From assembly GCA_047495785.1 (NCBI GenBank), contig JBLDXI010000001.1, positions 1,798,001 through 1,862,000 on the forward strand: a stretch of DNA of 64,000 bases, read 5' to 3'. The translations under genes were made by a program, and so were the position numbers. Shown here piece after piece: positions 2,965 through 48,700 of the stretch. This stretch comes from Lepidodermella squamata (lineage: Eukaryota; Animalia; Gastrotricha). The notes beneath the pieces are model-generated. The model was not told the origin of the DNA, did not search any database, and was given only the letters and a program-made list of their open reading frames with translations. Within the stretch, counting starts at the first letter, position 1; each line of letters opens with the position of its first letter.

Positions 2965-5499
2965 TTAAAGCTGGTTCAAAAACCGGGAAATAATGCCAGA
3001 AATCACGATAAGAACCAGATTTAGGCCGAGAGAGGACGCGGAAGATGCCTTGTAGACGGTTTTCGGGCATGGCTTCGCAGTTGTTACTGGAAGGTCGGGC
3101 GACGCTGCTAGCTTGGCATAAAGCGCCGGTAAATCTTTCGACCAAAACTGAAACAGAAAAAGGGTAAAAGGCTGGCTTTTTAATATTCAATTAACCAACC
3201 TCGCAATCTCGAGCTTTATACGATTTAATCAACTTTTGCTCCTCGCCCGAGTGGATGTCGAATGTATAGCCATACTGCTCGTATTTCGGCCACTCAGCCA
3301 AAGGAACCTGGTTCGGTATTTTATCAGCAACGTTCGGGTCGCTAAATTCAATTTTCTATAAAAAAAATCCGGTTGGGTAAAAGGCCGTCATACCCAAATT
3401 TAGCGAAGTTGGTCCACCATTGGATTGCTCGTTTAGCCACCTTTCGGTCCGCCTCTTGGTAATTAACCTTACTCTTCGGGTCATTTTGGTTCAAAGCATC
3501 GCCGAGAACAAACCTGAAAATCACGGTTTTAATTGACAGTTCAATTTTCAGGTCTAAATCTTACGGCATTTCATCTCCATGGCTGACCCCGTAATACGGT
3601 GGATTCGGCGAAAATTCAGCGCGATGGGAGAAGTAATAGTGGTAGACATTATTTTTGCTAGAATTAGCGAATGCTGTAGCCCAGTCTAGAGCAGGGCAAA
3701 TGATTGCCTCATCTCCGATAACGTCCTTAACCTGCTCAGCGACTAGATCTTTCACCATAACAGGCTGATTATCGAAATCAGGAACGCGCCAGTACTGCAT
3801 TTCGATGGCATCTCGCAGCAATTCTTCGCTTCGAATGCCGTTTGCCGGGTAAAAGACGAAAAGGCTGTCGATCGCACGGCGAAGTAGCGATTGCGTAAAT
3901 TCTTCAAAATTTTCCTCGTGTTTATCCATATTCGGGAAGAGCGAGTTGATCTGCGCGAGAAATTGAATTCCCCAAAAAAATTAAAAAAAATTAACTTACA
4001 AGAGGAATGACTTTCAAGAACATTGAGCCGTCGTCACTATTCGAGCCAACAATTATTGGCACGTCGTTGAAATTTCCTTCTGCGAGCATCTCGCGAGGGC
4101 TTTTCGGTAGAAAATCGCCGTCAACCACCGGCACCCAAGGTATCGACATCAGGCCAGGTGTTACCGTCTTCAAATCCTGCGAATAAATCCAACTTAAAAT
4201 TTGACAAAATTTCTCAGTATTTATATTACGTATTCGATAGCTAGAAATTGAGCTCTGACTATCTTTTTGGCATCACCAGCGCGGAGGCAGTCAAGTTTAG
4301 TTTTGACAGACGTAGTAGGAATAGCCCCCTCGATGCAGGCATCTTTTTTCCCCTTCGCCTGGACGTAGCAAAGGCCAAACGGGGTCAATTTGCTGATGAG
4401 ACTTGGAATGTCCGAAAGGTTCAGACCCTTCGGAAACTTCTCGCGGCACTCAGCCAACGGCCTCATTCCTTTCGACAGCGTTCCCATCAATCGATGAGTT
4501 CGAGTGAGTGCCTCTGATTTCGTCATAGTACCCCAGCTCGAGAAGGCTGAGGCGCTTTCGATGATAGCCCGGTGGAACAGGCCTTTGCTGTAGGGTGACA
4601 GCAGATGAAGGGCCACTGAGACAGCACCTGCACTCTCCCCGGCAATTGTGACCTTATTAGGATCGCCGCCGAATGAGGCGATATTTCTCTGGACCCATTT
4701 CAGAGCTTCAACCTGGTCCCACATACCCTGGTTACCAGGGACCTCATTGGTGCCAAGATAGGCGAAACCAAGTGGTCCAACTCGGTATTGAATGGCGACG
4801 AAAATCACGTTTTGGTGTCCGGCCATAACGGTTCCGTTATAGATGGTCATCGTGGTCATTCCAGTGGCGAAACCTCCGCCGTAAATCCAAACGAAAACTG
4901 AAAAGGAAAAGGAAAAGGAAAATTAACCTTAATTTCAGTGCGTAAGATCCTAACCTGGTAAAGGGTCCGGCTTCGGTTTCACATTCAAAGTGTCATCCAA
5001 ATGCCTCTTCGGTACGAAAACGTTCAGGCTAAGGCAGTCTTCACTATCTGGTACGTCTAGAGCCTATTAAAAATAAGAAATTAAATTTATAAAAAAAAAA
5101 TAAAAAAAATTGTCAACTAACGAAAAGGGCTACAATACCCGATGGGGGTATTTGCGGGCACCGAGCCGGTAATGCAATGGCGTCAAAAGGCTTGTTCGCA
5201 CTTCCTAGTTTCGCCTTTGTTTGAGGCTTGGCGTAACGGCGGAAAACGGGTCGAAAAATGGTACCGCCGTCCACAGGAGCTTCAGCACTGAAATTAAACG
5301 GGATTAGAACTTCAAAATATCGAGACTTTGCAACAAACTAAGGAATTCCAGTGAACTCGTAAACGTCATCATTAGCGTCTTTCACGTTAACATAGTGACC
5401 CCGGATGAATCCAGCAGGTGCAGAAATCGTTGGGGAATAGATCATCTCGCAACTCGTTAGTTCGAGAGCGATACCGAGTAATACCAGGAACCGAATCAT
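2965..5499 (-). CDS. Type-B carboxylesterase/cholinesterase-like protein CE1, catalytically competent, probable GPI anchor
   Basis: Spliced model has signal peptide MIRFLVLLGIAL, SEDCL, GGGF oxyanion loop, GESAG nucleophile, GSNSDDG acid and GVSHGDE His. C-terminus ...KASSASSLGLNLVLIVISGIISRFLNQL* is small residues followed by a hydrophobic tail. Confidence 0.9.
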
Positions 5500-5892
5500 T
5501 CTCGAATAATTCCTAGCTAAAAATTAACACGTCCAAATAAACTAGTCTGCCAACATGAACAACTTACATTCAGTGCTTTCTCTGGACGGGCACACCCTAC
5601 CCATTGCTCCAGTGAGCAAAAAACGGTGGCTAAGAGATAAGATAATGAGGAAAAAATCACCTCTTATGAACTACATGTTGGCCAACTCCAAAGATAATAT
5701 TAACGGACTAGATCAAAATTATGTCAAATAAAAAACGTCAACTTTTTGGCAGTTGAGAGATAATTCATACCAGTTTATTCTATAAAAGATTACAAAAATA
5801 TTTACAACTGAAAGGCGATCGCGTAGTGAGAAAGTGGGAAAATGCTGTAAATTTCGAAGTAACAATTGAAAAATCTAAGCGAATCAGGGATC

Positions 5893-7330
5893 TCAAGTCA
5901 ACTTGTCGTGCGTTTTCTTGTGATGTGATAGGCTTGTTTGAAGTTGAAACGCTTTGCCGCAAGTGTCGCAACGAAATTGCCGCTCTGAGCTGTGGGTGAA
6001 CATATGCTTCTTGAGGTTCCCTGGGCTTGACAGCGTCCGGAAACAGACTTTGCACGTATTGGGCGAGGAAGAAAAGGCGGGGTCCGGCTCCACTTTGTAC
6101 GCAATTGAGTGCGATGGAGCTATAAATAAAGGTCAATTCACGCTTAAAAATGTTGTTAAATTGGCAGTTATTAATAGCGAGGGTCCGGATCAGAAAATTA
6201 TGGGATATATTTGAGCCCATTAACCCTTTCACGGCGGAATTTTTTTTCAGCCAAGCAAAAAAAAATCGAATTTTTTAAATTTCCAGCAAATTAAGGAAGG
6301 AATCGGAAATCGGCAACCACATGCTATTTTAAGGCATGATGCGCATATTTCGCATCAGTTACTGGTTTCACTGAAATTTTCAATCCCGCTATTTTTTCAA
6401 AAATAGATTCATCCGGATGAATTCATAGAAATCGTCAGCCATGCTATTGTGCTGTCAGTTTTTCTTGGAATTTGGAAAAAACTGAATGGGTAGTCAATTA
6501 GACCCTGCCGGACACGTCTGTGAAGTCAGATAGACCAGGAAAAGTACCCAAGACATCGTTTTACTCGATTGAAAAAAATAAGAAAAACGTGCGTCGGTTT
6601 GAAATTTTAAAATTAATCGTATTCCAAGAGGAAAACAGATAACTAAATTTGACTTATGGATTCTTGTAGGCAACATCCGAAAATAGTATTTTGCCAATTA
6701 TCATGGAAAAATTCGTTAAATTGATGGAACTGTGAATTGGCAAAGTCGAAATTCCGAAATCGTCCTTTCCGCCGTGAAAGAGTTAAGGCAATTTTGATTT
6801 TGACCTTTCGCAGTTCGCAGGGCATTCACTGAAACTGAAATGTATTTTTCTCATTTTTTGATGCTAAATCTGTCCAAATTCATTTCAAAACAATGCTCAA
6901 TATAAGCTGAAAACTCCAAGTGCGATTCTACATGAAAATTAGCGTCAAAAATTAATTTATGCTAATCGCCCAAATGCGTTCATGATCGCCAAAAATCAGG
7001 TAAAAATCGTAAAATCACAATAATTTGCAGGTAATTCAGGAATCCCCTTCTTGTTTAGCCCAAAATTAACCGACTCTATGCTTAGCTGCTGTTGCTTGAA
7101 ATCAAACTCACCGGCTTTTTTAGTCCCCTCCTTGAGAGCCTCGTTTTCTAAGAACAGCTTCCGGTTTGCGGCTTCAAGTTCAGCAACTATAAATTATGAT
7201 AGCTATTAATCCAAAAATTCTGAGCTGAAAGGAACAGCCAACTCTTTTTCGAAGCGTCCTGCAATTCTTGCTTCATTCGGTGATATTCAGGCAAAGGGAT
7301 TGTAATGGATGCCGGGTTCAATCGAGCCAT
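5893..7330 (-). CDS. Small coiled-coil + 2x C2H2 zinc-finger protein (ZF1, 3 exons)
   Basis: Exons at ~7330-7243, ~7186-7112 and ~6119-5893 join in frame via GT-AG introns: MARLNP...KKIAELEAANRKLFLENEALKEG...CKVCFRTLSSPGNLKKHMFTH...CDTCGKAFQLQTSLSHHKKTH. Confidence 0.8.
6224..6782. mobile_element. piggyBac-type non-autonomous element (MITE) in ZF1 intron 2
   Basis: TTAA on both sides (6220-6223, 6783-6786). 16-bp terminal inverted repeats ccctttcacggcggaa / ttccgccgtgaaagag (1 mismatch). No transposase ORF. Confidence 0.85.
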
Positions 7331-7474
7331 TGAAATTCGATAGCGTGATCTTATCTTTGATTTAAAAAAAAATTCTATAAGCCAAAATATTGCTGAAAAA
7401 TCAATTTGAGACATGTAAATCAATAGAGAAATTCAGGTGATGTCATTCGTAGTAATATCAAGCAATCATTATTG

Positions 7475-7822
7475 TCATTTGTTGCACCTACGCCGGTGTC
7501 CCATGAGAACAGTGGGTTGGTGGAAGGCCTTGCCGCAATTTTCGCACTTGAAGCGTTTCACAGGATCGTGGATATAGGAATGCTCGACCAGATTAGACTT
7601 CGTTTTGAACTCACGAAAACAAACCGGGCACGTTTTGTCGGACAGTGGCTTGTTAGCTGTAGCATCGAAGGAGTAGGTTGACGAGTTACCTATGGAAATA
7701 ATTGATCTATCACACGGGCTAACTCGCATTGCCAGCCCCTTACCTTGCTCGGCAATCTGTTGTCGTAGTTTTTCGAACTCGGCTTTGCAAGATTGGCAAG
7801 AAGATATGTGAGAGCAGGGCAT
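7475..7822 (-). CDS. CHCC-cap/coiled-coil/C2H2+C2HC zinc-finger mini-protein (ZF2)
   Basis: MPCSHISSCQSC...LRQQIAEQ, then a 54-nt GT-AG intron, then YSF...CPVC..HSYIHDPVKRFKCENC..HRRRC. Confidence 0.85.
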   Translation of the reverse strand: MPCSHISSCQSCKAEFEKLRQQIAEQGKGLAMRVSPCDRSIISIGNSSTYSFDATANKPLSDKTCPVCFREFKTKSNLVEHSYIHDPVKRFKCENCGKAFHQPTVLMGHRRRCNK

Positions 7823-7960
7823 TTCAATAAATCGCTATAAAGACTGAATCTTTAATAGAAAAAAATCTGCCCGATTCCAACATATAGCAAATAAAAAAAA
7901 TATATTAGGTAAAAATGCGATCGTATCAGATTTCACAAATAGTCTTGTTAGGTATTTCCC

Positions 7961-8302
7961 TTAATTGCACCTACGACGATGGCCACTGAGGCCGGTGGGT
8001 TGTTGGAAGGCTTTGCCGCAATTTTCGCATTTGAAGCGTTTAACAGGATCATGGGTATAGGAATGCTCGACCAAATGAGCCTTCGTTTTGAACTCACGAA
8101 AACAAACTTTACAAGTCAAGGCGGACAAAGGTTTGCTGCCCGCTTCATCAAACGCGTATCTCGACGATTTTTCTGCAAAAATTAGAACTTGAACTTCGGA
8201 AATTTGTTTTAGGTTACTGTTACCTAATTCAGCATTTCGATTCAGAATTTTTTCGAATTGAGCTTTGCAAGCCAGACAATTGGAAATATGAGAGCAAGAC
8301 AT
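7961..8302 (-). CDS. CHCC-cap/coiled-coil/zinc-finger mini-protein (ZF3)
   Basis: MSCSHISNCLAC..., 51-nt intron at the same position, finger pair closely similar to ZF2. Confidence 0.85.
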   Translation of the reverse strand: MSCSHISNCLACKAQFEKILNRNAELGNSNLKQISEVQVLIFAEKSSRYAFDEAGSKPLSALTCKVCFREFKTKAHLVEHSYTHDPVKRFKCENCGKAFQQPTGLSGHRRRCN

Positions 8303-8374
8303 TGTAAAAAAATCACTATATAAAACATTAATTATTCAAAAAAAATTATCCAGAAATTTCACAGCATAGTCCGA

Positions 8375-8731
8375 TCAGTTCCCGCATTTTCTTCGATGGG
8401 TGTTGAACCCGCTCGGTTGTTGAAATGTCAAGCCGCAGTTCTCGCACTTGAACTTTCGAACTGGGTCATGAATGTGGGAGTGCTCGGTCAGATAATATTT
8501 CTTCTTGAAGCCACGAAAACAGATCTTGCAAGTAAATTCCGACAAGTCTGAACTATTCTGCGATTCGAACGTGTAATTCGATGAGTGGGCTGTATTCAAG
8601 GTTGAAATTGGCAGCAAATTTAGAATAAAATTTAGAATATTACCTTGTTTCTCAAGTTCTGCAACCCGCTGACGCAGATGGGCGATCTCCCATTGACATT
8701 GTTTACACGCCGAATTATGAGAGTCTGCCAT
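8375..8731 (-). CDS. Coiled-coil/zinc-finger mini-protein (ZF4; first Cys of the cap replaced by Asp)
   Basis: MADSHNSACKQC...LRQRVAELEKQ, 54-nt intron, CKIC..HSHIHDPVRKFKCENC..HRRKC. Confidence 0.85.
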   Translation of the reverse strand: MADSHNSACKQCQWEIAHLRQRVAELEKQGNILNFILNLLPISTLNTAHSSNYTFESQNSSDLSEFTCKICFRGFKKKYYLTEHSHIHDPVRKFKCENCGLTFQQPSGFNTHRRKCGN

Positions 8732-8812
8732 GCAATCTGTTACAATAACCCTAAAACTAATAGATAAACTTTCATTTAGCCTAGTGACCTTGTAGCAAGT
8801 GATATGTAAAAA

Positions 8813-9177
8813 TTAGTCCGATTTGCCGCATCTCTTGAGGTGATGTCTCATGACGCTAGGTTGTTTGAACGCTTTGCCGCAAAATTCACATTTGAAGCGG
8901 CGAATAGCGTCATGGAGGTACGAATGCTGGATCAGGAGACGTTTGCTCTTAAACTCACGAAGGCAAACCTTACACGTTGTCTCGCTGATAGTCGGCTCCG
9001 AGGTTACAGCGAATGAATAACCAGAATTGCTGACTGGAACGTGAATAAGATAAATTGGAAAAAAATTATAAAAAAAGTTGCTTTACCCTGATTCTCCAGC
9101 TCGGTTATTCGTTTTCTTAAGCTTTCGACCTCAATTCTACAGGTTTGACACGTTGAGTTGTGGCTGCACAACATCAT
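8813..9177 (-). CDS. CHCC-cap/coiled-coil/zinc-finger mini-protein (ZF5)
   Basis: MMLCSHNSTCQTC...LRKRITELENQ. A 53-nt GT-AG intron restores frame to SGYSF...CKVCLREFKSKRLLIQHSYLHDAIRRFKCEFCGKAFKQPSVMRHHLKRCGKSD*. This second exon is not in the ORF track. Confidence 0.85.
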
Positions 9178-9243
9178 TAAATGATTCCCAACTACCAATA
9201 GGAAAATAAGACAGCATTTTCGGAGGAATTTAAAACAGGAATG

Positions 9244-9861
9244 TTATTTAAGGTCCAAGCTGGAATCTTTCACTTCAGTTTGATCATTAGGGTCTTCGAA
9301 GTTCATGGAATCTTCCAGGTTTTGAAAAGGCCCAATTGGGTTGTTCCCACAAATCCTTTCATGACACCGTAAGGTTGATGGGTGTCGAAATTTCAGCCCA
9401 CATCGTGAGCATTTAAACCTGCGTTCTGGGTCATGAATAAACGAATGAAGCTTCAAGTTTCTCGTGTTTTTGAACTTCGCCGAGCAAATATTGCAGATGA
9501 CATCGATTGACGCATTTCCACGGCCGCCGCATTTCTGCAGGTGTCTTCGAAGCGAAAAAAGGTGTTTGAAGTGGGCGCCACAGTTCGCACAGTGCTGACG
9601 AGCTGATCCGCTGTCGGAATTTTGGAGAGCAGCTTTGATCGCGATCTGCAAAGGGTTCGAATCATTTTCCAAGATCACAACTTCAGACGAGTTTTCTAGG
9701 GTAGTTGGAACATCCGAAGTTAAGGAATTCAAATAAGGCTGGTAGGATTCAGATCTTTGCATGAGTTCGGCTATTCGAAATTCGAGGCTGGCCAATTTCA
9801 AATTCTTACGTGCATCGGTTAGCCTGCAGACGGCACATGAGGCAATATGGGAGCAAGACAT
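9244..9861 (-). CDS. CHCC-cap/coiled-coil protein with three zinc fingers (ZF6)
   Basis: 205-aa ORF: MSCSHIASCAVC, then fingers CANC..HLQKC, CNIC..HSFIH and CSRC..HERIC. Confidence 0.85.
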   Translation of the reverse strand: MSCSHIASCAVCRLTDARKNLKLASLEFRIAELMQRSESYQPYLNSLTSDVPTTLENSSEVVILENDSNPLQIAIKAALQNSDSGSARQHCANCGAHFKHLFSLRRHLQKCGGRGNASIDVICNICSAKFKNTRNLKLHSFIHDPERRFKCSRCGLKFRHPSTLRCHERICGNNPIGPFQNLEDSMNFEDPNDQTEVKDSSLDLK

Positions 9862-9917
9862 AATAATTCCTATAAATTGAGCGAAAAATCAGAGCTCAGT
9901 CAATTTCATAAAACCAG

Positions 9918-10280
9918 TCATTTGCATTTCATGCGGTGATGTCGCAGAGCAGACGGTTGTTGAAAGGCGGCTCCACATTTTTCGCATTTGAAACGACGTA
10001 CGGGGTCATGAAGTGGCAAATGATCTCTCAAAGTGTTCTTTGACGAAAATTCTCGGAAACAAATTTTACAAGCCAATTCTGACAGATTCGTTTTCGCAGC
10101 ATCGAAGGAATACGCGCTGGAACCCACTGCATAAAAATATTAGGAAGCTGTACTCAAATTAGGATCAATACCTTGGCTTCTAAGTTCAGCGAGCTCATTT
10201 CGCAGCTTTTCAATCTCCAATGCCGTCTGATTAAAGAAAGTTTTGCAGGTCTTACACGATGAGCGATGAGGACAAGACAT
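9918..10280 (-). CDS. CHCC-cap/coiled-coil/zinc-finger mini-protein (ZF7)
   Basis: MSCPHRSSCKTC...LRNELAELRSQ, 45-nt intron, then ORF 9918-10127 with the finger pair. Confidence 0.85.
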
Positions 10281-10389
10281 AATTCCAAGTCAACTCTAGA
10301 GCAACAAATAATGGTATCAAAACTACTATGCCAAACTTTAAAATGTACACAGGCGACTCAAGTAGAGCGAACTGCAAGGGCTTCAACTA

Positions 10390-10555
10390 ATTTTCCAAGG
10401 CCACAACTTCAGATGATTTTTCAGTTGTACTTGGAACCTCTGGAAAGGAATTCAAACAAGGCTGGGAAGATTCAGAACTTCGCATAAGTTCGGCTATTCG
10501 AGCTTCGAGACTCATGTCGAGACTGGCAAACTTCAAATTCTTACGGGCAGCACAT
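10390..10555 (-). pseudogene. Truncated, degenerate copy of the ZF6 5' half
   Basis: Translates ARKNLKFASLDMSLEARIAELMRSSESSQPCLNSFPEVPSTTEKSSEVVALEN*, colinear with ZF6. It has no cap, no in-frame start at the homologous site and no fingers. Confidence 0.7.
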
Positions 10556-10621
10556 TATATTTTCTCAAAACTAAGCGAAAATAGACGAAAAATCAGATCT
10601 CAGTCATTTTAATAAAAATAG

Positions 10622-10999
10622 TCATTTGCATTTCATGCGGTGATGTCGCAGAGCAGACGGTTGTTGAAAGGCGGATCCACATTTCTCGCATTTGAAACGG
10701 CGCACGGGGTCATGAAGCGGCAAATGATCTTTCAAATTTCTCTTCGACGTAAATTCTCGGAAGCAAACGTTACAAGCCAATTCCGACAGCTGCGTTTTAG
10801 TTTCACCGAAGGAGTACGCACTGGAACCAGCTGCATGATAAATATTACGATTTTGTATTCAAGTAAAACTAATTTATCGAGTCTCAATACCTTGGCTCTC
10901 AAGTTCAGCGACCCGATTTCGCAGCTTCGCAATCTCCAATGCCGTTTGATCAAAGACAAGTTTACAGTTCTTACACGATGAGCGATGAGGACAAGACAT
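10622..10999 (-). CDS. CHCC-cap/coiled-coil/zinc-finger mini-protein (ZF8), recent duplicate of ZF7
   Basis: MSCPHRSSCKNC...LRNRVAELESQ, 60-nt intron, then AGSSAYSF...CNVCFREFTSKRNLKDHLPLHDPVRRFKCEKCGSAFQQPSALRHHRMKCK*. Confidence 0.85.
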
Positions 11000-11105
11000 A
11001 ATTCCAAGTCAACTCTAGAGCAACAAATATTGACGGCAAAATTATCATGCGAAATTTTAAAATGTACACAGGCGGCTCAGTTAGGTAAATAGATCAGTCA
11101 GTTCA

Positions 11106-11634
11106 TTATGAGCGTTTTTTACACCTGGCTCTATGACTTCGAAGAGTAGACGGATGTTGAAATGCTGCTCCGCATTTCTCGCACTTGAAGCGCTTCGTCG
11201 GCGCGTGGACGTAAACGTGCTCCTTCAGGTTTTTCTTGTGTTTGAATTGAACAAAACAAAGGTTGCAGGTGAGTTCTGGAAATGAAGTGTCTCGGCTTTC
11301 CATAAATGAATAGTTCTTGTTCTCCACACTACTTTGAGCTATTCAATAAAATGCAATACAATTTCAAAGACCCAGCAAAAGCTTCAATTAAAAACTTGAA
11401 TTAACCTTTAGGATCGCCAACTTTATCATCCGATTCTTCTAGAATAATGCCCAATAAATTAAAATTCAGCCTTTCGTGTTTAATAGAAAGATTTTCTTTA
11501 CCAGAACTCGAGCGAAGAAGGTTATTTATCTTCAGAATTTTTACTTCCTGTAGCGCAAGTTTCATTCGCAATTCGTTATTCTCTTTCTGCAGTTTTGCCA
11601 ACTCGGCAGCCATTTTCTTCATTGTACCATCCAT
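11106..11634 (-). CDS. Coiled-coil/zinc-finger mini-protein without the CHCC cap (ZF9, ~3 exons)
   Basis: MDGTMKKMAAELAKLQKENNELRMKL... spliced to YSF...CNLC..HVYVHAPTKRFKCEKC..HRARC. Confidence 0.8.
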
Positions 11635-12130: not shown

Positions 12131-14378
12131 TCAGCTTCGACCGTGACAATGCAGTCCACCATTGCAGCTATCTTCTGAGAAATAAGATGAGGTTTGAATG
12201 AATTTCAAATGATTTTTTTATCGTTTTTGTATACCTGATGCTGTATCATCTCGGCTAATGACCTTGACCATCTTTGGCACAAAGCTGTTCCAGAACTGTT
12301 AAAATTGAATTCAATTGGGATTGACCTTTAATGAAGTCAAAGGGGCTTACACGACAATCTTTCGTTTTCAGTGCACACACCATGCCTTTGCCGTAATTGT
12401 GAAGCTGAATAACCGGATTCAAATCGTAGATCTGCTGAGGGCAATCTTCACCGATGTACAACGGCCATTGTCGAAGCTGGGGACCATTGGCTAGATTTTG
12501 TGTGTCCGCCTTAACAAAATTAGGCTGCCTATTAATAAATTGATTATTAGCGATTTTCGCCCTGGAGTAAATTCAAATTTTCGAACCCGTATTTTACAAA
12601 ATTAGTCCAATAGGCCATAAGAGATCTGCTTAATTGCTGAAAGAAAGCTGAGCTTAGCAAAAACGATATGACCTGATTAATAGCCAGCTACCTTATCATC
12701 ATGAGAATAATTATATTTCGATGCATATTTCGCGAAAGGCTCTCCCCAGATGAAAGGCAACTCGTCCCCATGAGTTACACCCATCCATTCCGGCCAAGCA
12801 TGCTAGAAAAAGTCAAAAATGAAAGCTTAAACCGCGGAAAACTTAGAAAACTCACCCCCGTTCGCCGGTGTGTAAAGAAATAAGCGTAAACCTTAAATTG
12901 AAATTTCGAAAAATAAGGAAATTATCTAGATAATTTACTGAACCTGAGATTTCATTTCTGAATGTGAAGATGCAACATCTGCCCAAGTCAAAAAAGGACA
13001 GGCAAAAGCTGCATCACTTATCGCCCAATTTGCCCCGTTTATCGCCCTGGCTCCGGCCGGGTATCCATTCCTGCTATTGATGTCCAACTTCGAAGTAGAC
13101 CAATATTCCAGCTGAACAGCCTCCGCGAGAAGCGGATGAACTTCCGGTTCAGATAGATGTAAAATCTCTAGACTTGCAGCCGCTAATTGCTCGTATTCAT
13201 AGAGTTTCAGATGATTCATCGCAGGATTCTGCGGCGAATTTGGCATTGTCAACAAATTCCTAGCCGCTTCGGTGTGGAGTAAAAGCATCGATCCATCGTC
13301 CTTATTCGCTCCAATCATAACTGGAACATGGCTAAATTTTCCAGATTTCAATAAAACCAATGGATCATCAGGAATAAAGTCGCCGTCGATGACTGGTCGA
13401 AAAGCTGGGTAATGACCGGCTTTAACTTCGGCATGTGGAAAGATTCCAGCTTCAACGGATCGTAAACAAGATACTAAATCGCTGCTATCATCTTGACAAT
13501 GGCTTTTCATCACGTGATCAGCCAGCAATTTTGTAACTTTTCTAGCCTGTTCACGCGTTTTATAAGCCCAGGGAGCAATGGCACTGCCGGATTGAGCTAT
13601 AGCCCGGTGAAAATAAGGCTGACTCTGGGGAGACAGTAAATGGAAGGTCACAGACGCCGCTCCAGAACTAGCTCCAGCTAACGTGACCGCGTTTGAATCT
13701 CCGTGGAAGGCTTCAATGTTTTGATTGATCCATTTCAAAGCTTCTAGCTGATCCCAAAGACCCATGTTACCGGGGGAATCTTCAAAAACGGCGAATCCTA
13801 ACGATCCCAGGCGGTATTGGATTGTTACAACTATGATATCGTTGTAAGCTGATAGCACTGTGCCGTTCATAGCCTCGATAGACGAACCTCCGGAGCTGTA
13901 ACCTTCTCCATTTATGAAAGCTAGTACCGGAGCTTTCCTATCGGAGTCATCTAATACAGCTTTCGGTACCCATATGCTCAGAGTTAAACAATCCTCCGAC
14001 TGCTGACCTTTCTGTTATGAATTGTTTAAAATTAGAAAAAATTGATTTTCGATTGCTTACAGGAGAAATTCTGTCATAACCAACAAAGCCGTTGAATAAA
14101 CCCGATTTTGATAATTGAGGGCAAGCTTTAGGTAGATCTTTGGCGTCGAATTCTTCAGACCAAGGTATTTTTGGCTGCGGTTTCTTGAATCTCAGCGGAC
14201 CGATCGGAGGTTCTGCGTAAGGCAGGCCGAGAAATTCGTAGGCTTGAGGCTTATTAGATGCCCCAACCAAACGACCCTTAACTGAACCAAGTTGAGTCTG
14301 TACCGCTACGGTTGGCAAATCATCGCATCTCACCAGGGAAATACCAAGCAGAATGTAGGTTAAATAAAAAGAAACCAT
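12131..14378 (-). CDS. Secreted carboxylesterase/cholinesterase-like protein CE2
   Basis: Signal peptide, GLPYAEPP, SEDCL, GASSG (Ser retained), GANKDDG, GVTHGDEL. Predicted end ...EDSCNGGLHCHGRS*. Confidence 0.88.
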
Positions 14379-14636: not shown

Positions 14637-16850
<2,214 letters not shown>

Positions 16851-17161: not shown

Positions 17162-19544
17162 TTAGCTGACTTGTGGACGATTGGGTAATACGACCCTTGG
17201 CAGGCGAGGGTCCCGCACTAAGCCAGCTGGAATGCCACCAGCAGGGAGTGGCGGCGGTTGTTTATCACGCGGTGGAGCTTGCGGTGGTGGACTTGCTTCG
17301 TTTTTACGAACTAAGAAAAAATTACAAAACTTGCAGAGCAAAATAATATTTGCACTCACTCAAATCAACCAGCGTCGGGAAGAATTCATTCCAAAACTAC
17401 AAAAAAAATGTTTTCGATCTTGGATGAAAGCTGAATTCTGATAAATACCATGCACTCGCGCTCCTTGAATTTAGGAACGATTTGCTCCTGCAGGGATACG
17501 TCATCGGGGTATAGGGACATTGCTGCCTTAACGGTTATGTTGTAACGGGGCCAGTTTTTCAGACTCAGCATCATGCTGTTCGGATTCCCATTGTCGATCG
17601 AATTCACGTTTCTTTATAGACAAAGGTTGAAGGAATTGAGAACGGAAATCTCCTTAAAATTTACCCGAACTTGGCAAAGTTGGTCCAATAAGCCATCAGC
17701 TGACGGCTGAAAAGTCGCTCGGCCGGTGAGAACTGAAAACCTGATTTTCCGATGTTCGTGAAAGGAAATCCCATTACGAATGGTATCTGAAACATTCCCG
17801 ACAATAGTTTCGACCTTTGTTATTTATTCAAACTTACCTCATCAGTATGAGGCACTCCCATCCATTCTGGCCATAGTGGCTGGGCAATGAAATGATACGT
17901 GTAAATCCACTGAAAAATTATGGTTATTTTGTCTTACATTACAGTTTCGATGGGCATATGTGTACATGAAGACCTGTAAAATCATCGTTGAATATGAATT
18001 AATTTTGAAATAAGTCATCTTTACCGTTGAAGAATTCGCCAAAATATCAGCAAACTCTACACTCGGGCAAACAACGGCAAAGTCGCTAGTTGCTGCCACC
18101 AGAGCCTTCAGCACAGCATCTCCCTTCAAATTCTTCGAGTCGCACGTGTATTGCATTTCAATGAAGCGCCGCATCATATCAGTCGTTGGCAAATTATTAC
18201 GCGGGTAAAACGCGAAATACTCGCGAATGAAAGCCGAAAAATCAGTCGAATTCAAGCTATCTGTCGACTTCGATGCATCGAGAGGTGTTGGGAACTTATC
18301 AAGAGCCTTACTCGACGATAGCATGTACAAGGACGCTTCCTCTGTGGTTGTTCCGATCAAAATCGGCTTGGTTATCTGCAGTTCTTTAGCTTGAACGCTT
18401 GGGTTTTTCGTGAGGAAAACGCCATCAATTATTGGGGTGAATGTGCCGTATGGAAGTCCGAGCGACCCACTGCTATCAGGCCTCAAGAGTCGATTCTGCA
18501 ATCTGACTAGGTCCTCTACGTCAAGAAGCTTCAAACAAGTTAGTTTGTCCTCGACAGTTGAGTTCCGATCAACATTCTCGCAAAGAGTTTCCACGGCTGT
18601 ATTAGCCAGTAAAAGGGTTCGTCTCGCAGCCTCCAACTTAGGAACGTAGTTCCAAGCGGCCGATGTTGGCGAGCCACTTTGCAAGATCGCGTGTTTGAAG
18701 TAGGGTGCGCTAATGTTGGCCAGGAGATGGATACCCACAGACGCAGCCCCGGCGCCTTGCCCGAAAATCGTGACCTTATCCGGGTTCCCGCCGAACGCGA
18801 TTATGTTGCTTTGAATCCATTTCAGGGCTTCGAGTTGATCCCACAAACCCATGTTACCCGGCATGTCTTTGTCGTCCAGGTAGCCGAACCCTAATACGCC
18901 CAGTCGGTATTGAACGGAAACTACGATAACGTTGTTGTAAGCGGCCAATGCGCTACCGTTATTGACCGGCATTTGGCCTGACCCTGATTCGTACGCTCCG
19001 CCGGGAAATAGAACCATGACAGCTAAACTAGCGGTGTGGTTAGTTTTCGGAAGGGAACCAGGGTTCAGCGGTCCACTCAATGAATTAGCGGTATAGATCT
19101 TTTCCAGGGTCATCCGAGGTACCCAGATGTTGAGGAAAAGGCAATCTTCCGAGTAAGATTCAGTTGGAATCATGAGGTCGACATAGTCCTGCTTGAACAT
19201 GGGAACCCCGGTTGGCTGGGGGCAAGCCGCAGCTGGTTTAGCAGCGACTAGTAGTTGTACTTGCCGGCTACTCTTCGGCCGAGTCTTTTGAAACCGGAGC
19301 TCACCAACGGGAGGTTCGGCATCTAATAGTAAAATGTATTATAAGATTTTCGGTAAATTACGTAAATCTCACATGGAATTCCGAGAAACTCGTAGACAAA
19401 TAAGCCACTACCTCTGCCACCGATGTTGAGCCCTCTGCCCTGAATGACTCCAGAAGTCGTGGAAATCGCAGGGCTGTATCGGTCTTGAGAGCAGGCGAGG
19501 TTGAGAAAGACCGCTAAAATAGCTAAAATTACTGTTTTCGTCAT
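17162..19544 (-). CDS. Non-catalytic cholinesterase-like secreted protein CE4 with Pro-rich tail
   Basis: Paralog of CE3 with elbow GQGAG. Tail is RKNEASPPPQAPPRDKQPPPLPAGGIPAGLVRDPRLPRVVLPNRPQVS*. Confidence 0.88.
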
Positions 19545-39263: not shown

Positions 39264-42200
39264 TTAAGGGTACGGGATTTCGAGAGGTGCTGGGCATGGT
39301 GTTGTAGTTAGACCAGGCTGGAAGTTTCCTTGTAGACGAGCGTAAGTCTTGGGCAACTGACTCATCCAAAACTAAATCAAACATTTCGGTTATGATCTGA
39401 TTAAATTCATGCATACACAGAAGAATTACCTGACAATCTCTTCTTTTCGGAGAATGTATAAGCTTCTGTTTTGATCCATCCACATCGAGAACGAGTGAAG
39501 GACCCACTAAGGGCTTGTACAGAGGCCACTCTGGTAGCTTGAGTCTGTCACCAAGGCTGTTATCTACTTTGTTAGGATCTCTTTAAAGGTGTTACTACTT
39601 TTAGAATGTATAGCTAACTTAGATGCGACATAAATTTACCCCGTGCGAGCGAAATTCGCAACATACTGCGTAGCGTACCTAGCGAGCATCTTCTCATCTT
39701 TTGTGTACGGTATTCGAACTTCATTTTCACGCAATGCATCACCGAGGGTATAGAGCAGCTCGTCAGTATGCTGAACACCCAACCAAGCTGGATCTTCTAT
39801 GCCTTCCGTTCGGTGCTCGAAATGAAAACTGTAAACCTGCAAAGCGAAAAATACATTAAGAATAAGACTGAGAGATAAATTGAGCTTACAGAGGAATTTC
39901 TAGCATAGGCATCCGCCCAAGCCAGAACAGGACACTTGAACATTTGATCACTGACCATCTGGTTGAGGGCTTCCACTACCTCCATGCCTTTCATGGGCTG
40001 CTGGCTGATTTTATCATTATCAGACCTCCAATACTGGGTGTACATAGCCTTGGTGATAATTGGATCAATTTTGATTCCATTAAGAGGATAATAGGGGTAG
40101 TAGGAACCAATCAATTGTACATATGTTTCCATAGTGAAAGCACTGACATCCCTGTCGGGATTCTTTGAAGTTGGGAGTATTTTCCCACCCTAATACAATT
40201 AAGAAGTTTATCTCATACTCATAGCTATCATGTTATCATAAATACCAGTGGAGTAGTAGTAAGGAAGAAGCTTCCTTCATCCTTAGTAAGGCCTACTAGT
40301 ATAGGCACGTCCTTATAATTACCGTCAGCGATCATTCGCACAGGATCTCCAGTGAACATATCGCCATCGATAACTGGGGGTAGTCCGATGCCCCCGACAA
40401 GGCTGGTAGACCCAGTTTCAGGGCTAACATCAGGCAATGCGAGCTGCAGCCTTGACGCGTATTTGTGTGGTACTTCACGTAAACATTTAACTTGCGCTTC
40501 CAACGTGGAAATATCACTACAATAGTCTGGGTAGTTTTTCGATAGGTATTTTAGCAACTTGACGGTTCGTTGTATCCCTTGTTCCTTTGTAATTGTTCCC
40601 CAAGATACGATCGGCGATCCACTAACCACCATGGCTCTATCGATGTACTGTTGAGCTTTTGGGGTCAGCAGCAACAATGAAGCAGAAGCCGCACCGGCAC
40701 TTTGACCAGCGAGGGTAATTTGGTTAGGATTTCCACCAAAAGCCGCGATATTTGCTTTGACCCACTTCAAAGCTTCGATCATGTCCCAGAGACCCATGTT
40801 GCCAGGAACGTCATCTATTCCAAGATAGGCGAAACCTAGTGGGCCTAGACGATATTGAATCGAGACGTAGACAAGATTCTCAAAGGACGAGAGCGATGTT
40901 CCGTTGAACTTCAAAATTGTTGTAGAGCCCTCCTGGAATGAACCTCCATGAATCCAGACAAAAACTGGAAAGAACGTTAAATACATATCTAAAATAAAAT
41001 CTGTCTTCGATCTAGTTTTAGACAGTCTAACACACAGAACGAATCCGTGTCAGATTGACGGATATTATTTCAGATGGACCGATTTTTTGAGAAGCCGAAT
41101 CTGAATTTCTGTGTTAGACACGCTATCGAAAACCAGAACGAAGTCCGCAAGTAAATCTCCGAAAGTAAAACTTAAGGCTCGGGGCCCGGGAATAAAATAC
41201 AGCCGGAATTTAAAACTACAGGTAAATTACTTAATACAGCATTTCGAATATTCCCAGCAATCAAAATCACTAAATTTATCGATTTTTTTATTTCTGCCAA
41301 ATTGGCAGCTATTCCGAAGTTTCTAAATACAGGTTGTTACAAAATAAAATATGGGGTTAGCCACCTAAAATTGCATACAAAGTTTTGTGGCGTTCACGGT
41401 AAGGCTAATGAAAACTAGGCCTCCGTGATTTATAAGCACTAATAAAAAACGCTATTTGTCCGGATAATTGAATTCGAACAAATAAGAAGGGTGCCTAAAA
41501 TTATGGAACCATAAGTGAGCTCAAAAACTGAAAATCTGCATTCCCGTAGCCGTTCGAACCACCATAGATTACCTTGAATTGGGCGATCGATTTTCCACAA
41601 TCGGTCATGAAAGCATCCATTTAAGCACAAAATATCTAAACGGCAACTAACTTTCAAACGAAATTCGAGAAAATGAAAGCCCAAAGTCCGAAAGCAATTG
41701 CCCGGATGCACTTATGTACCGAAAGCTGATTCCCGTAAGTCGAACACCCGATTATTGTCTAGTTACGTAATCACTGAAACTGGGTGAAAATAAAATTTTA
41801 ATACACCAGGAGGCGTTTCGATCCCTTGATTTCGCGGACGTTATACTGAACTTATTACATTTCTCTATGGCTAGCTATAGAATAATCCTTTAGTATTTAG
41901 TTATTAAGTAAAATTGAGACCTGGCGCAGAAGCCTTGGTGTCAAATGTGGACTTGCGAACCCAAATGTTGAGGAACAAGCAATCTTCTGAGTCGCTCACA
42001 TTTTGGCCCTAAGGATAAACATAACTTGAATGAAAAATGGCGTTCAAAGAATATGCTTACGAATTGTATTGTAGTTGCACTGGGTGGCGGCTGGGAGCAC
42101 TGGCTGGGTAACGTGGTGGCGATCAGCTCCTCAGTCCATGGCTTTTTTGGCACTGTCTTTCGGAACCTGTTCTCACCGATTGGTGGCTCTGCGAATGGAA

Positions 42201-45700: not shown

Positions 45701-48700
45701 GGAATTAAGCTTTGGTACGCGGTCCACGAAGGTGTCGTCCAACTTGCGAAAGATTACAACGAGGCGATTTCCGACGGTTTCAGACGATAATTAATTAATT
45801 TCTCTTTGCAGTTCCTAGTGTTATGGCTTATGGCTATCGACGAAGGATGAGCTTAGGGCTATTCCTAATGCTTACGTTTACGAAGACTTCATTTAGTAAT
45901 TCGAGCCAATTTATATCTATGGCCCGCTGCCGTGTTAGTATGAAGGCGCCTCAGATTTTATAATAATAAAGCACTATAACTAATAACGCGAATGAATCGC
46001 TGAAAAATCGGTTAAAGGCTGAAGGAACTGATAGGACTGTCCCGCCTTCACAGCATTTCTCTCGAAAACCGACGATGTCATCAATCATTGGGTTTCTGAA
46101 ACCTTTGATTGCTGAGCCTAGACGTGGTCGCGGGCGGGGTCGTAGTACGGCTTTTGTTCCAGCCCAAGCTGAACCTGTGGTTTCTGAATCAAGGCATGGT
46201 CGTAGTCGGTTAACAGCTATCACATCGATATCTGTTGACGAAACTTTCTATTGCCGAGGTCGAGTTCGTGGCAAACTCACCAGCTCTGTTTCTGTCGACG
46301 AAGAAAAAAAGGAGGGCTAACAACTCGAAATACACGCCGGGGTTGAAATTTGGAAACAGCTTTCTAATTATTTGTCGGAAATCAGTATCTTATTAGTGTC
46401 GGAATATACTGTTATTAAAATGAAGCTTTTCCGATGAAATAATGCATTTTTAATAGCGAAATATTTATTCCGATGGTTCCGATGGTTTCAGATAAAAATG
46501 GTAAGATGAAAGTAATTATTGTTCCGATGATTTGAAGTTACTTCGAAAAATCGAATATTAACCCGTATAAACCTGACCCCAGATATCGATCAGGGAAAAT
46601 TATTCTCTGATTGGTTTCTAGTGTAACGTTTTTCGCTGATTCTAAATCTGAAAACCGTATATTTTTATCATGCACTGTTATCGAGTTACGTAACCACACG
46701 CCGGCGTGTGTCCAGGCACAAAGCGCTAACAAACAAAATGCATTTTTTTCGTAAAAAAAATGGCGTAAGTCTTTGAAAAAATTTGATGAAATCAGTTCCA
46801 GCACATTTCAGCTCATTTCGTGCCGGTCTGGGAAGAGCTAAGAAGCTGCGGGTCGACGATCTGATGGTCGATCAAATCGCTCTAGTCATGCAGTTTATCC
46901 AGCAGTTACGCTCGGATAATGCTGACACCGCTCCGTCATCTCACTGCCCGCCGACTGGGCAGTCCCCTCGTAACTGGCATGACTCGTGGAGAGCTTGAGC
47001 CGGAGTTGGTCAGCGTTGCGCCGTGGCTGTCGATCGGCGCTGTCGATGTCATGAGCAGCGGCGGCCTCCGCGTGAGTACGCCACTGCGACGAACGCTGAC
47101 AAGCTGATCAAGCGTGTCGGCTTCCCTAAGGATGCGTTCCGCAAATCAGACTTCCGCGTTCACTATCCGGGCCGGCCTGACCCGACGGTGACCGAATCGG
47201 CTCGCATTTTGAAAGACAAAAGCTCGGCCATCTGCTTCCGCCTGCCCCCTGTTACACTGGCGACACTCTGCGCCCACTTTTCAGGTCCAGGTATATCGAC
47301 GAAATCCGCGAGATTCCCACGCTCCCTGGTAAGCAGACGTCGCCGACGGTGCTCGTCTTCCGAACAGCTGAGCATTACGAGGGCGCCATGGCTAATGGTG
47401 TCAAGTTTCTGAATCGTCGCATTAAAGTCCACATGTTGAAAAGCAAGGCTCTCCCGCCTAACTGCCTGAAATGGGCCGCGGGCCGCTTACGGCCACGTCG
47501 CTGTCGATTGCTCTCCGGACAACACCCAAAGCTGCAGCCGCTGTGTTGCGACTGACCACACGATTTCCACCTGTCTCGCTGAGCCTGAGGATCGTCATTG
47601 CCCCCACTGCAGTGGCGGCGGTGGGTCTGGTTTGTGGCGTGGCTGCCCTGCATTCAAGGCCGCACAGGCTGAAGAGGTGGCTTGCCGCCGTGCCATCGCC
47701 GTCGCCCGTGAAGAGAAAGCTGCCGAACGTGCGTCGGCAAACAAGCGAAGATTAAGATTCCCGAACACCTATGAGGTGGCCCTACGCACTTCTTCTCCAC
47801 CCGTGACTTTGCCGGCGGACCGCCGCCCGCTCCATGGTCACCCCCGCCTCCTATGACGGTGCCTCCTGCTACTTCGCCTCCGTCTGCCAATCCACTTTCT
47901 ATCGCCTGATGGCGCCCGGCTTTTTAGTCTTATGGAAGAGCGGTTCCAGCGTATGAACGCCGTATCGAAACTGTCGGACGCTTATTCGACAGGCTCTTCG
48001 CTTCCCCGCTGCCACCTCAAACCAGCTCGTCCCGCAATGGCTAGTACGCTGCACACGCTACTACAATGGAACCCGTGCGGACTAAGGACCTGACAAGGAC
48101 CTTGAAGCTTGTCGACTTATCAACCCTTGGCTTTTTTCATAAGTGAAACCTTTCTTTTCTCTCTTTTACGTGTCACCACTAGGGGATAATGCCATTTTTC
48201 GTTGTGATCGGGTACAGGACCCCGATGATCTGTTGCTCAATGGCGCTCGTGGCGGCGCTGCTCTGTTTGTTCGGGAGGGCGCTCTCGTGCTTGCCGAGCG
48301 GCGGCTGGCTCTGACTGGTCGCAAGCTTAGTGAGTGGCTCGCTTTGGTGTCGTCCCTTTCACTGGCTCGTCTGTCGTTCGGTTGCTTACTGGCTATTGTC
48401 CGCCGACTTCGTCCTTAGATCTCAGCTTCCTGGAAACCGAGTTCGCAGGGGCCTCAGCCTCAGGTTTCCCTTGTTTCTTTAGCGGGGACCTTAATGGCAA
48501 GTCTCCGTAACGCCTTGGATCTTGGATGCCCAGTTCCGCGCTGCGAAAGCGGCTCAGAAATTGAGGCGGGGTGATTTCAACCAGCGATATGTTGAAGCCC
48601 TGTCATTCCAGCACTGCTACCGTGAAGCTTATGCCCGCCTACATCGTTTCGATGTCGCTGCAGATTCTTCGTGCTTCCGATGTTATCCGCATGCCCGCTC

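Follow-up and report, generated by a model that had tools for sequence, protein, structure and literature searches.

The region between positions 5893 and 11634 of the window (the whole 64-kb stretch of DNA that was analysed) was found by ORF and gene modelling to be occupied by nine minus-strand genes and one decayed fragment. These genes look like a lineage-restricted, tandemly duplicated and apparently new family; C2H2 factors that carry an oligomerisation module at the N-terminus are already known. The reading we favour, with a probability of about 0.5, is that of a minimal C2H2 transcription-factor-like family combining a putative zinc cap, a parallel dimeric zipper and a DNA-binding finger pair. 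According to this proposal, exon 1 would encode an N-terminal [C/D]-x-H-x3-C-x2-C motif binding one zinc per chain and capping a short parallel dimeric leucine zipper, and exon 2 would supply a flexible SSxY[SAT]F linker of ~20 residues and a basic C2H2 + C2HC pair of canonical geometry. The dimer would place four fingers on DNA, so that two half-sites, each of about 6 bp, could be read. We infer zinc binding, dimerisation, DNA binding and a regulatory role for these proteins from their sequences.

Each of the nine units starts with an ATG and ends with a stop codon of its own, all reading frames are intact and the splice sites are conserved. The predicted proteins measure 96-129 aa, with the exception of g6 (205 aa). 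Every intron of the array has GT..AG ends and lies in phase 1; in the five intron-bearing capped genes it spans 45-60 nt and is located after the cap and helix. The features are as follows.

7330-7243, 7186-7112 and 6119-5893, minus strand: g1, 129 aa, three exons, capless end gene; Pfam zf-C2H2 at 38 bits
7822-7744 and 7689-7475, minus strand: g2, 97 aa, cap MPCSHISSCQSC, short zipper, C2H2 + C2HC fingers; Pfam match
7743-7690, minus strand: g2 intron, 54 nt, phase 1
8302-8224 and 8172-7961, minus strand: g3, 96 aa, cap MSCSHISNCLAC, Asn at core a23, C2H2 + C2HC fingers
8223-8173, minus strand: g3 intron, 51 nt
8731-8644 and 8589-8375, minus strand: g4, 100 aa, cap variant MADSHNSACKQC, C2H2 + C2HC fingers
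8643-8590, minus strand: g4 intron, 54 nt
9174-9087 and 9033-8813, minus strand: g5, 102 aa, cap MLCSHNSTCQTC, finger linker HDAIRRFKC
9086-9034, minus strand: g5 intron, 53 nt
9861-9244, minus strand: g6, 205 aa, intronless, cap MSCSHIASCAVC, long-form helix, three fingers
10280-10172 and 10126-9918, minus strand: g7, 105 aa, cap MSCPHRSSCKTC, long-form zipper (one heptad more)
10171-10127, minus strand: g7 intron, 45 nt
10367-10536, minus strand: psi-g6, decayed partial copy of the g6 5′ half, recognised by direct repeats and ORF translation
10999-10891 and 10830-10622, minus strand: g8, 105 aa, cap MSCPHRSSCKNC, recent g7 duplicate
10890-10831, minus strand: g8 intron, 60 nt
11634-11502 and 11338-11106, minus strand: g9, about 121 aa, capless end gene, C2H2 + C2HC fingers
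11501-11339, minus strand: g9 intron, splice choice tentative

The gene g1 has an additional 75-nt exon (7186-7112). In g6, a ~55-aa spacer and an extra C2HC finger lie between the cap and helix and the C2H2 + C2HC pair, and the protein ends in an acidic tail. In psi-g6, the cap is deleted and the fingers are absent, and its direct repeats D7 and D8 show 78-87% identity to 9641-9789. The array is nested within a cluster of carboxylesterase (detoxification-type) genes. The nine same-strand genes proposed by the sequence-only reading were borne out by the gene models and by a tandem finger-pair regex, whose 9 matches in the window all fall inside the array; its conserved phase-1 intron was found in five capped genes and does not extend to the intronless g6.

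Seven of the nine proteins open with M-x-[C/D]-x-H-x3-C-x2-C, the motif always starting at residue 3. A six-frame regex for [CD]xHx3Cx2C gave 7 matches in the 64 kb, all on the minus strand, at 7816-10993 and after an ATG, whereas 50 shuffles of the window averaged 0.26 and never gave more than 2; it recovered all of the caps reported earlier, six of the form C[SP]Hx3Cx2C and one DSHNSACKQC. All seven caps share the His and both cysteines of the CxxC. At the first ligand position, six have Cys and g4 has Asp, which is another zinc ligand; Cys to Asp is the sole ligand change. These residues are kept although their codons differ among paralogs (TGC/TGT, CAC/CAT, TCN/AGC). The cap is probably a metal-binding-type site, likely with one zinc per chain. 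A solved precedent for a 10-residue C-x-H-x3-C-x2-C site was not found among PDB sequences or by literature string search.

The cap passes directly, with no gap, into a heptad-patterned helix, which carries the LRxR[IV]AELExQ segment already noted from the letters. AF2 modelled residues 10-35 of g7 exon 1 as helical (pLDDT 91-97), the mean pLDDT of residues 1-10 being 77. When residue 9 is taken as a and residue 12 as d of the heptads, the core reads C, C, [FIV]16, [LI]19, [IVN]23 and L26, the first two being the CxxC cysteines Cys9 and Cys12. By the Harbury rules, beta-branched residues or Asn at a together with Leu at d form the dimer pattern. What sets the long form apart from the short one is an indel of 7 residues between cap and zipper, which amounts to exactly one heptad. 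The zipper comprises 2-3 heptads in capped members and at least 4 in the capless end genes, which keep coiled coil and fingers as had been described: g1 has 4.5 heptads, with Asn at a37 and a44, followed by two C2H2 fingers, and g9 has 4-5 heptads with Asn at a19, its N-terminal part giving weak coiled-coil matches and nothing else in Pfam. Among the g-to-e′ (i, i+5) pairs, 16 of 26 are attractive and none is repulsive, a result matched by 0 of 20,000 shuffles of non-core residues, a significance that is overstated since paralogs are non-independent samples. Reciprocal charge swaps were seen at the g29/e34 pair (E29/R34 in g7, R29/E34 in g8) and at the preceding pair (K22/E27 in g6, E22/R27 in g7 and g8), and the charges of each paralog are complementary in a pairing with itself. 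A parallel dimeric zipper, the dimerising coiled coil proposed earlier, is well supported in silico, because the CxxC lies at a/d, the indel is one heptad, capless zippers are longer, and the g-e′ pairs are attractive with swaps.

Because of the self-complementary charges, the reciprocal swaps and the one-heptad difference between short and long forms, the sequences predict that homodimers are favoured and that the long forms (n=3) are mutually insulated, with no free combinatorial mixing. A heterodimer of g7 and g8, the youngest pair, would be disfavoured by the E29/R34 versus R29/E34 swap; cross-pairing may perhaps occur among g3-g5 and, less clearly, g2. Thus, from the earlier idea of bZIP-like combinatorial heterodimers, bZIP-like pairing set by charge was retained, but the charges favour homodimers and the long forms appear insulated.

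Since the zipper is too short for stability alone, it is proposed that the metal cap staples it, either within each chain or across two chains, both of which would be possible because the CxxC cysteines lie on the a/d core face. The capless g1 and g9 would compensate by zippers of 4 or more heptads. In the CD4-Lck zinc clasp and the Rad50 zinc hook, C-x-C or C-x2-C pairs of two chains share one zinc beside helices or coiled coils, which is a possible model, by analogy, for a cross-chain cap; however, these contribute two ligands per chain against four in the array and have no sequence relation to it.

The position of the CxxC cysteines at the a/d core, where two chains meet, also bears on whether the cap, with architecture and dimer unchanged, is a regulatory sensor and not a structural site. 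Metal or redox state would then control dimerisation, and so DNA binding, through reversible binding of zinc, copper or Fe-S or through disulfides formed by Cys9/Cys12 across the dimer axis. Sets of 3Cys+1His ligands are typical of labile sites too, and the array lies within a detoxification-type cluster. However, neighbouring esterase genes are weak evidence, and the capless members show fingers and zipper working without a cap, so that we regard a sensor as distinctly unlikely. Slightly less probable still is a metal-free linear signal for lipidation, degradation or docking, with a helix binding another protein and not itself. It would agree with a motif that matches no known zinc domain, but the four ligand positions are kept amid varying neighbours, the CxxC falls exactly at the helix N-terminus, the usual place of a zinc ligand pair, and the g-e′ complementarity and charge swaps point to self-pairing.

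A Pfam scan of exon 2 or the whole ORF of each gene returned zf-C2H2 (PF00096) as the sole family, in all nine genes at 27.9-38 bits (gathering cut-off 25.2), matching two stretches per gene and three in g6. A 49-residue template fits all nine finger pairs, with C-x2-C-x12-H-x3-H/C spacing and a 7-residue H-to-C linker. The pair is preceded by the SSxY[SAT]F linker, whose Y[SAT]F, previously assigned to the family, is present in seven of nine genes and missing from two. The expected order of C2H2 then C2HC is seen in eight genes, whose last finger is C-x2-C-x12-H-x3-C, but g1 ends in C2H2. Likewise, the non-canonical linker holds as HDPV[KR][RK]FKC in g2-g4, g7 and g8, where it replaces the usual TGEKPY/FxC at equal length, and the remaining four genes have variants. 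The finger profile is in register with DNA-bound ZNF568, PRDM9, CTCF and Zif268 over both fingers and the 7-residue linker, and the top Foldseek matches were the DNA-bound two-finger modules ZBTB10 ZF1-2, SALL4 and ZNF217, the designed Zif23-GCN4 dimer ranking tenth. The net charge of the finger region is +3 in g6 and ranges from +7 to +12 in the other eight genes. At contact positions -1, 2, 3 and 6 the pairwise identity of the paralogs is 0.25, as compared with 0.51 at other non-ligand positions. Paralogs differ mainly at finger 1 DNA-contact positions and zipper e/g charges, which points to diversified targets with mostly homodimeric pairing. The basic charge, the variable contacts and the DNA-bound structural neighbours are indirect evidence for the predicted sequence-specific DNA binding.

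Ubiquitin-binding CCHC fingers share the C-x2-C-x12-H-x3-C spacing of the last finger, and adaptors such as NEMO have a C-terminal C2HC finger after a coiled coil. The array proteins could accordingly be adaptors that bind protein, ubiquitin or RNA, and not DNA, like NEMO, optineurin or FOG-type CCHC fingers, and the profile of the N-terminal helix has a weak likeness to the coiled coils of NEMO and TRAF3 (E 0.4-1). Nevertheless, the canonical register of both fingers and linker, the strongly basic finger region, the variation concentrated at DNA-contact positions and the absence of any UBZ-type Pfam match make an adaptor a shade more doubtful than a linear signal.

The favoured combination of cap, zipper and finger pair has partial counterparts. 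The engineered Zif23-GCN4 (PDB 1LLM) also joins two Cys2His2-type fingers to a leucine zipper, its dimer reading two short half-sites; the array would be its natural counterpart, in which the zipper lies N-terminal instead of C-terminal to the fingers and is joined by a metal cap, which the engineered protein lacks. With bZIP proteins the array shares Leu at d, Asn at a and attractive g-e′ pairs, which set pairing specificity in bZIP, and its helices show the heptads and complementary g-e′ charges of such zippers. Unlike bZIP, it has no contiguous basic region, DNA reading would be via the fingers, and capped zippers have only 2-3 heptads. bZIP identity was rejected, as the cap at residues 3-12 precedes the zipper and bZIP_1/bZIP_2 gave no Pfam match.

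The ZAD (zf-AD, PF07776), of roughly 75-90 residues, is likewise an N-terminal zinc-coordinating dimerisation module before C2H2 fingers, a role that is predicted for the cap, and the insect ZAD-C2H2 proteins resemble the array in being lineage-specific, tandemly clustered and fast-diversifying. However, the ZAD is a C4 module that lacks a coiled coil and has two widely separated CxxC pairs, whereas the cap has 10 residues (C/D, H, C, C) and is fused to a zipper, and the array proteins have just two fingers (three in one) in about 100 aa. ZADs homodimerise, with heterodimers limited to close paralogs (PMC7913770), which parallels the homodimer-favouring charge pattern of the array. ZAD identity was rejected, since zf-AD gave no match at E <= 1 and the cap consists of one CxxC plus C/D-x-H within 10 residues.

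BCL11A/BCL11B are C2H2 factors that self-associate through one N-terminal zinc site with 3Cys+1His ligands (PMC8036541, PMC12127727). Their CCHC finger resembles the putative zinc site of the array in being single and N-terminal with 3Cys+1His, but has another ligand order and spacing and no zipper, and belongs to large proteins with no detected sequence similarity to the array. The RING consensus centre is C-x-H-x(2-3)-C-x2-C followed by a helix (PMC13064309), and in Pfam the cap matched parts of zf-C3HC4_3 (positions 18-34, E 0.015) and of zf-RING_2 (E 0.039), at 14.7-15.5 bits against cut-offs of 27. This likeness to the centre of a RING was the one sequence resemblance of the cap that came to light. 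In RING, C-x-H and C-x2-C serve two different zinc ions. RING identity was rejected: four of eight ligands are present, the distal pair is absent, and the motif begins at residue 3, which leaves no space for a first CxxC.

When 1.84 billion representative proteins (a library lacking this genome, which probably comes from an unsampled phylum), the PDB and one metagenome scan were searched with a profile of cap and helix, no relative emerged, and no homologue outside this genome was found. KRAB, SCAN and BTB domains gave no Pfam match at E <= 1. A known domain was sought for the cap, and no named family was found in Pfam, PDB sequences, the 1.84 billion proteins or a literature string search, in agreement with the sequence-only reading, which had not recognised the architecture.

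The dN/dS ratio was 0.12 for g2/g3 and 0.41 for g7/g8 (dS = 0.27), and pN was 0.3-0.5 with saturated pS, synonymous sites being saturated between most paralogs; these values indicate that the paralogs are old and that purifying selection is acting. Read depth over the array is ~60-160, that is, single-copy, true repeats nearby reaching thousands, so the array is not transposon cargo. In a single RNA-type run (X2), at least g1 is transcribed and spliced, with both introns visible: the ends at the joint 6119|7112 are CT..AC when read on the plus strand, and the loose end at 7186 continues into 7243-7257. X2 contigs also lie on g7 and on g8 (exon 2 and 3′ end); in this run no RNA was seen for g5, g6 and g9, and splicing of the small introns was not seen among the X2 matches listed. 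The concern that the loci might be untranscribed or transposon cargo was not borne out, at least g1 being spliced and the depth being single-copy. That the array is decaying or non-functional DNA (pseudogenes, transposon cargo) or the exons of one larger gene is largely refuted and close to negligible, for psi-g6 and the three genes without RNA stand against the intact frames and splice sites, the substitution ratios, the single-copy depth, the ATG and stop codon of each unit and the agreement of g1 splicing with its model.

A role of the family in transposon control has no link in the present results. A more specific form of the favoured cap-zipper-finger reading, which we hold to be unlikely, would be a natural zinc-stapled zipper with two chain-bridging zinc sites at the N-terminal end of a minimal leucine zipper, one formed by Cys9/Cys12 and the other by Cys3/His5 of both chains, giving metal-dependent dimers and an insulated homodimer set, with the nine paralogs probably coming from one trans-spliced operon. 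If true, dimerisation, and hence DNA binding by proteins of 100 residues, would be strictly metal-dependent, the cap and zipper would add a hitherto undescribed oligomerisation domain to those of C2H2 factors, and no smaller dimeric zinc-finger regulators would be known.

The ORF listing and the minus-strand sequence placed nine genes head-to-tail on the minus strand at 5893-11634, numbered here from g1 (7330-5893) to g9 (11634-11106), and the nine same-strand genes of the sequence-only reading were borne out by this listing together with intron enumeration. The enumeration of frame-restoring GT..AG introns left one clearly best model per gene, with donors of the AAG/GTAAGG type and T-rich acceptors ending in CAG or TAG; the splice choice of g9 is tentative, and so is the start of g5, placed at the second of two ATGs. 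Every intron is in phase 1, those of five capped genes measure 45-60 nt, and the proteins are 96-129 aa long, except for g6, an intronless ORF of 205 aa with three fingers. The introns of g2 (7690-7743), g3 (8173-8223) and g4 (8590-8643), of 54, 51 and 54 nt, respectively, contain no in-frame stop, so that their retention would lengthen the linker by 17-18 residues and leave the frame intact. Alignment, heptad analysis, dN/dS and the tree relied on joined spliced proteins, and every search and structure prediction on single exons or intact ORFs; the tree of the nine proteins resolved g2/g3 and g7/g8 only.

The word depth of the DNA sequencing run X1 was ~30-200 over the array versus 2,973-8,358 over high-copy repeats at 6194-6784 in the long intron of g1, which indicates that the array is not itself repetitive. 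These intronic repeats, which include a second stretch at 6982-7178 (depth 863, where the remaining array lies at about 100), presented many variant contigs and many loose ends, and are probably small transposon-derived repeats. Synonymous sites were saturated in most paralog pairs (pS 0.74-0.97, pN 0.29-0.52), and dN/dS was 0.12 for g2/g3 and 0.41 for g7/g8. The second run, X2, confirmed both introns of the three-exon gene g1: the 992-nt joint at 6119/7112 had plus-strand ends CT..AC, and the loose end found at 7186 ran on into 7243-7257. It is this spliced form that shows X2 to contain RNA-derived contigs. Other X2 contigs lay on g8 exon 2, the g8 3′ end and g7 exon 2; depth was low on g2-g4, no contigs were found on g5, g6 and g9, and no splicing of the small introns was seen among the X2 matches listed. 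A pseudogene array was ruled out by depth, intact frames and dN/dS, and the same frames and ratios, with the single-copy depth, ruled out transposon cargo. The loci are thus neither wholly untranscribed, as g1 is spliced in X2, nor carried by a transposon family, two of the outcomes that had been named beforehand as refuting the proposal. The array is real, selected, single-copy and at least partly expressed.

Between g8 and g7 lies a decayed fragment (10367-10536; low depth in X2), a copy of part of the 5′ half of g6 in which the cap is deleted and the fingers are absent. It shows that the youngest duplication took g7 plus the start of g6, and it is what was left behind when g8 arose from g7. 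This relic occupies the 341-nt gap between g8 and g7, while the other intergenic gaps within 7331-11105 are of 56-144 nt. A T-rich acceptor ending in AG was found 13-20 nt upstream of each ATG, and reading the listed intergenic stretches by eye turned up no AATAAA. This layout is operon-like and, as read from the genomic sequence, suggests spliced-leader trans-splicing. Carboxylesterase (PF00135) paralogs form a large same-strand cluster on both sides of the array; three of them were checked via Pfam and the remainder judged by translation.

Carboxylesterase paralogs of the same-strand cluster (window coordinates)
4221-5499, carboxylesterase paralog
12935-14378, carboxylesterase paralog
15306-16610, carboxylesterase paralog
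17842-19200, carboxylesterase paralog
40228-40986, carboxylesterase paralog
50264-50950, carboxylesterase paralog
55846-56532, carboxylesterase paralog
58364-59080, carboxylesterase paralog

A neighbouring ORF encodes a GalNAc-transferase; exact look-ups of it and of g6 in public assemblies gave no record. Elsewhere in the window, 46000-50000 is GC-rich (0.51 vs ~0.43 in the rest) and includes a plus-strand ORF (48571-49227) with a 'KAPGLDGI'-like string that recalls non-LTR reverse transcriptases, for which Pfam gave no match.

The first exon of the capped genes g2-g8 encodes a short N-terminal cap followed by a helix. A six-frame search of the 64-kb window with the expression [CD]xHx3Cx2C returned seven matches, each at residue 3 of an array gene, against a mean of 0.26 matches on shuffled sequence. 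Alignment of the seven cap exons revealed that M1, H5, C9 and C12 are invariant and that at residue 3 six genes have Cys and g4 has Asp, in agreement with the six Cys-first caps and one Asp-first variant originally described. The cap codons vary (TGC/TGT, CAC/CAT, and TCT, TCC or AGC for Ser4), and since the ligands are kept despite these differences, conservation acts on the protein. The AlphaFold2 model of g7 exon 1, built with the cap-exon alignment, presented a helix at residues 10-35 (pLDDT 91-97) preceded by a less confident segment (mean pLDDT 77 for residues 1-10), which puts C9 immediately before the helix and C12 within its first turn. The N-terminal start of a helix is the usual site of a zinc ligand pair, and the binding of zinc by the cap is predicted with moderate confidence. 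An ATCUN-type N-terminal copper site was rejected, the His being at position 4 or 5 and not at position 3.

The cap had been described as unrecognised, and we could not find a known domain that it matches. A RING requires eight ligands; the cap has four, beginning at residue 3, and was rejected as a RING. Pfam recognised zf-C2H2-type families only in the array proteins; RING models aligned with residues 1-17 just through their middle part and below threshold (E 0.015-0.039; 14.7-15.5 bits, with cut-offs of 27), and in the literature searched the string C-x-H-x3-C-x2-C was found only as the centre of the RING C3HC4 consensus (PMC13064309). An exhaustive HMMER search with the cap and helix profile over 1.84 billion representative proteins revealed nothing credible, its six matches (E 6e-8 to 8e-4) all being repetitive coiled coils or low-complexity repeats without an N-terminal cap. 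PDB sequences gave coiled-coil peptides only (E > 0.3), and Foldseek gave no match for the 36-residue exon-1 model. The g2 ORF, g7 exon 2 and g6 likewise found no match in word-indexed protein searches, for g6 ESM Atlas returned generic C2H2 clusters only, and the literature search yielded no paper that treats this family or the zinc fingers of the animal group. A metagenome scan with the finger profile recovered no family member, its one match being an unrelated multi-finger gene (ODIC01002653.1, 653-1480) with the inter-finger linker HDPVKRFKC, which is therefore not unique to the array family. As the window's own proteins were not included in the protein libraries, these blank searches say little on relatives, and do not show confinement to one species.

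With C9 set at a and C12 at d of the heptad register, the later core positions of the helix are [FIV]16, [LI]19, [IVN]23 and L26, followed in the long forms (g6-g8) by a30 and L33. Hydrophobic residues occupy 31/40 of a and 28/35 of d positions, versus 2-3 of 34-35 at b, c, e and g, and 10/33 at f. By the Harbury rules, parallel dimers are classically marked by Leu at d together with a beta-branched residue or Asn at a. The short forms (g2-g5) differ from the long forms by an indel of exactly seven residues, which leaves the heptad register between cap and zipper unchanged. Opposite charges face each other in 16 of the 26 g-to-e′ (i, i+5) pairs and like charges in none, whereas other registers gave 0-8 attractive pairs as well as some repulsive ones. 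Shuffling the non-core residues 20,000 times never reached the observed value, a result that is not a true probability because the paralogs are related. Moreover, the charges are reciprocally swapped at two places: E29/R34 of g7 is R/E in g8, g3, g4 and g5, and K22/E27 of g6 is E/R in g7, g8 and the aligned pair of g2, g4 and g5. These swaps argue for maintained interhelical pairs, and from them the g7:g8 and g6:g7/g8 heterodimers are predicted to be disfavoured and every homodimer favoured. Members g3-g5 are predicted to pair with one another, g2 less clearly so. A coiled-coil dimer is predicted with fairly high confidence. The end genes g1 and g9, as first noticed, are capless and retain the coiled coil and the fingers; their zippers extend over 4-5 heptads with Asn at a, versus 2-3 heptads in the capped genes, a difference that fits a cap compensating for a short zipper.

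All nine finger pairs follow one 49-residue template, C-x2-C-x12-H-x3-H, a 7-residue linker and C-x2-C-x12-H-x3-C, with the final ligand being H instead of C in g1, and the corresponding expression matched nine times, always within the array. The finger profile spans both fingers and the linker when aligned to DNA-bound tandem fingers. AlphaFold2 folded exon 2 into two beta-beta-alpha units (pLDDT 72-84) after a poorly ordered SSxYSF segment, and the best structural neighbours of this model were the DNA-bound two-finger modules of ZBTB10 (ZF1-2), SALL4, ZNF217 and BCL11A, in addition to the designed Zif23-GCN4 dimer. Net charge over the fingers is +7 to +12 (+3 in g6). At the contact positions, paralog identity is 0.19 in finger 1 and 0.31 in finger 2, versus 0.51 at other non-ligand positions, the pattern that would be expected for diversifying DNA specificity. 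DNA binding by these proteins is predicted with fairly high confidence, slightly above that for the coiled-coil dimer.

In the proposed mechanism, a short parallel zipper would join the two chains, and zinc would stabilise its N-terminal end. Each chain may bind its own zinc, or the sites may bridge the chains, which is geometrically plausible since C9 and C12 lie on the a/d face. A linker of ~20 residues would connect each chain's two-finger reading head, and the dimer would read two short half-sites, predicted at about 6 bp each. The joint reading, as dimeric DNA-binding factors that combine a zipper with a metal-binding cap, is given a probability of about 0.5.

C2H2 factors have repeatedly acquired lineage-specific N-terminal modules (KRAB, SCAN, BTB, ZAD) that shape pairing and recruitment. 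The array proteins belong to the classical C2H2 superfamily and failed the membership tests for ZAD, RING, bZIP, KRAB, SCAN and BTB; we rate the family as putative C2H2 factors with a predicted lineage-specific N-terminal oligomerisation module. In its predicted function it is alike to ZAD-C2H2 proteins, with their zinc-dependent N-terminal homodimerisation and tandem expansion (PMC7913770), and to the N-terminal CCHC of BCL11 (PMC8036541, PMC12127727), and alike in design to Zif23-GCN4 (PDB 1LLM). If true, a 10-residue metal cap with a zipper of 2-3 heptads would solve C2H2 pairing in a novel way and at very small size, and would be a natural counterpart to engineered two-finger/leucine-zipper dimers. 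With whole proteins of ~100 residues, it would offer a compact scaffold for the study or design of dimeric DNA readers. The family comes from a barely sampled animal lineage, in the unusual setting of an apparent operon of paralogous regulators, and the e/g charge swaps among its young paralogs would provide a clean test case of how duplicated dimeric regulators become mutually insulated.
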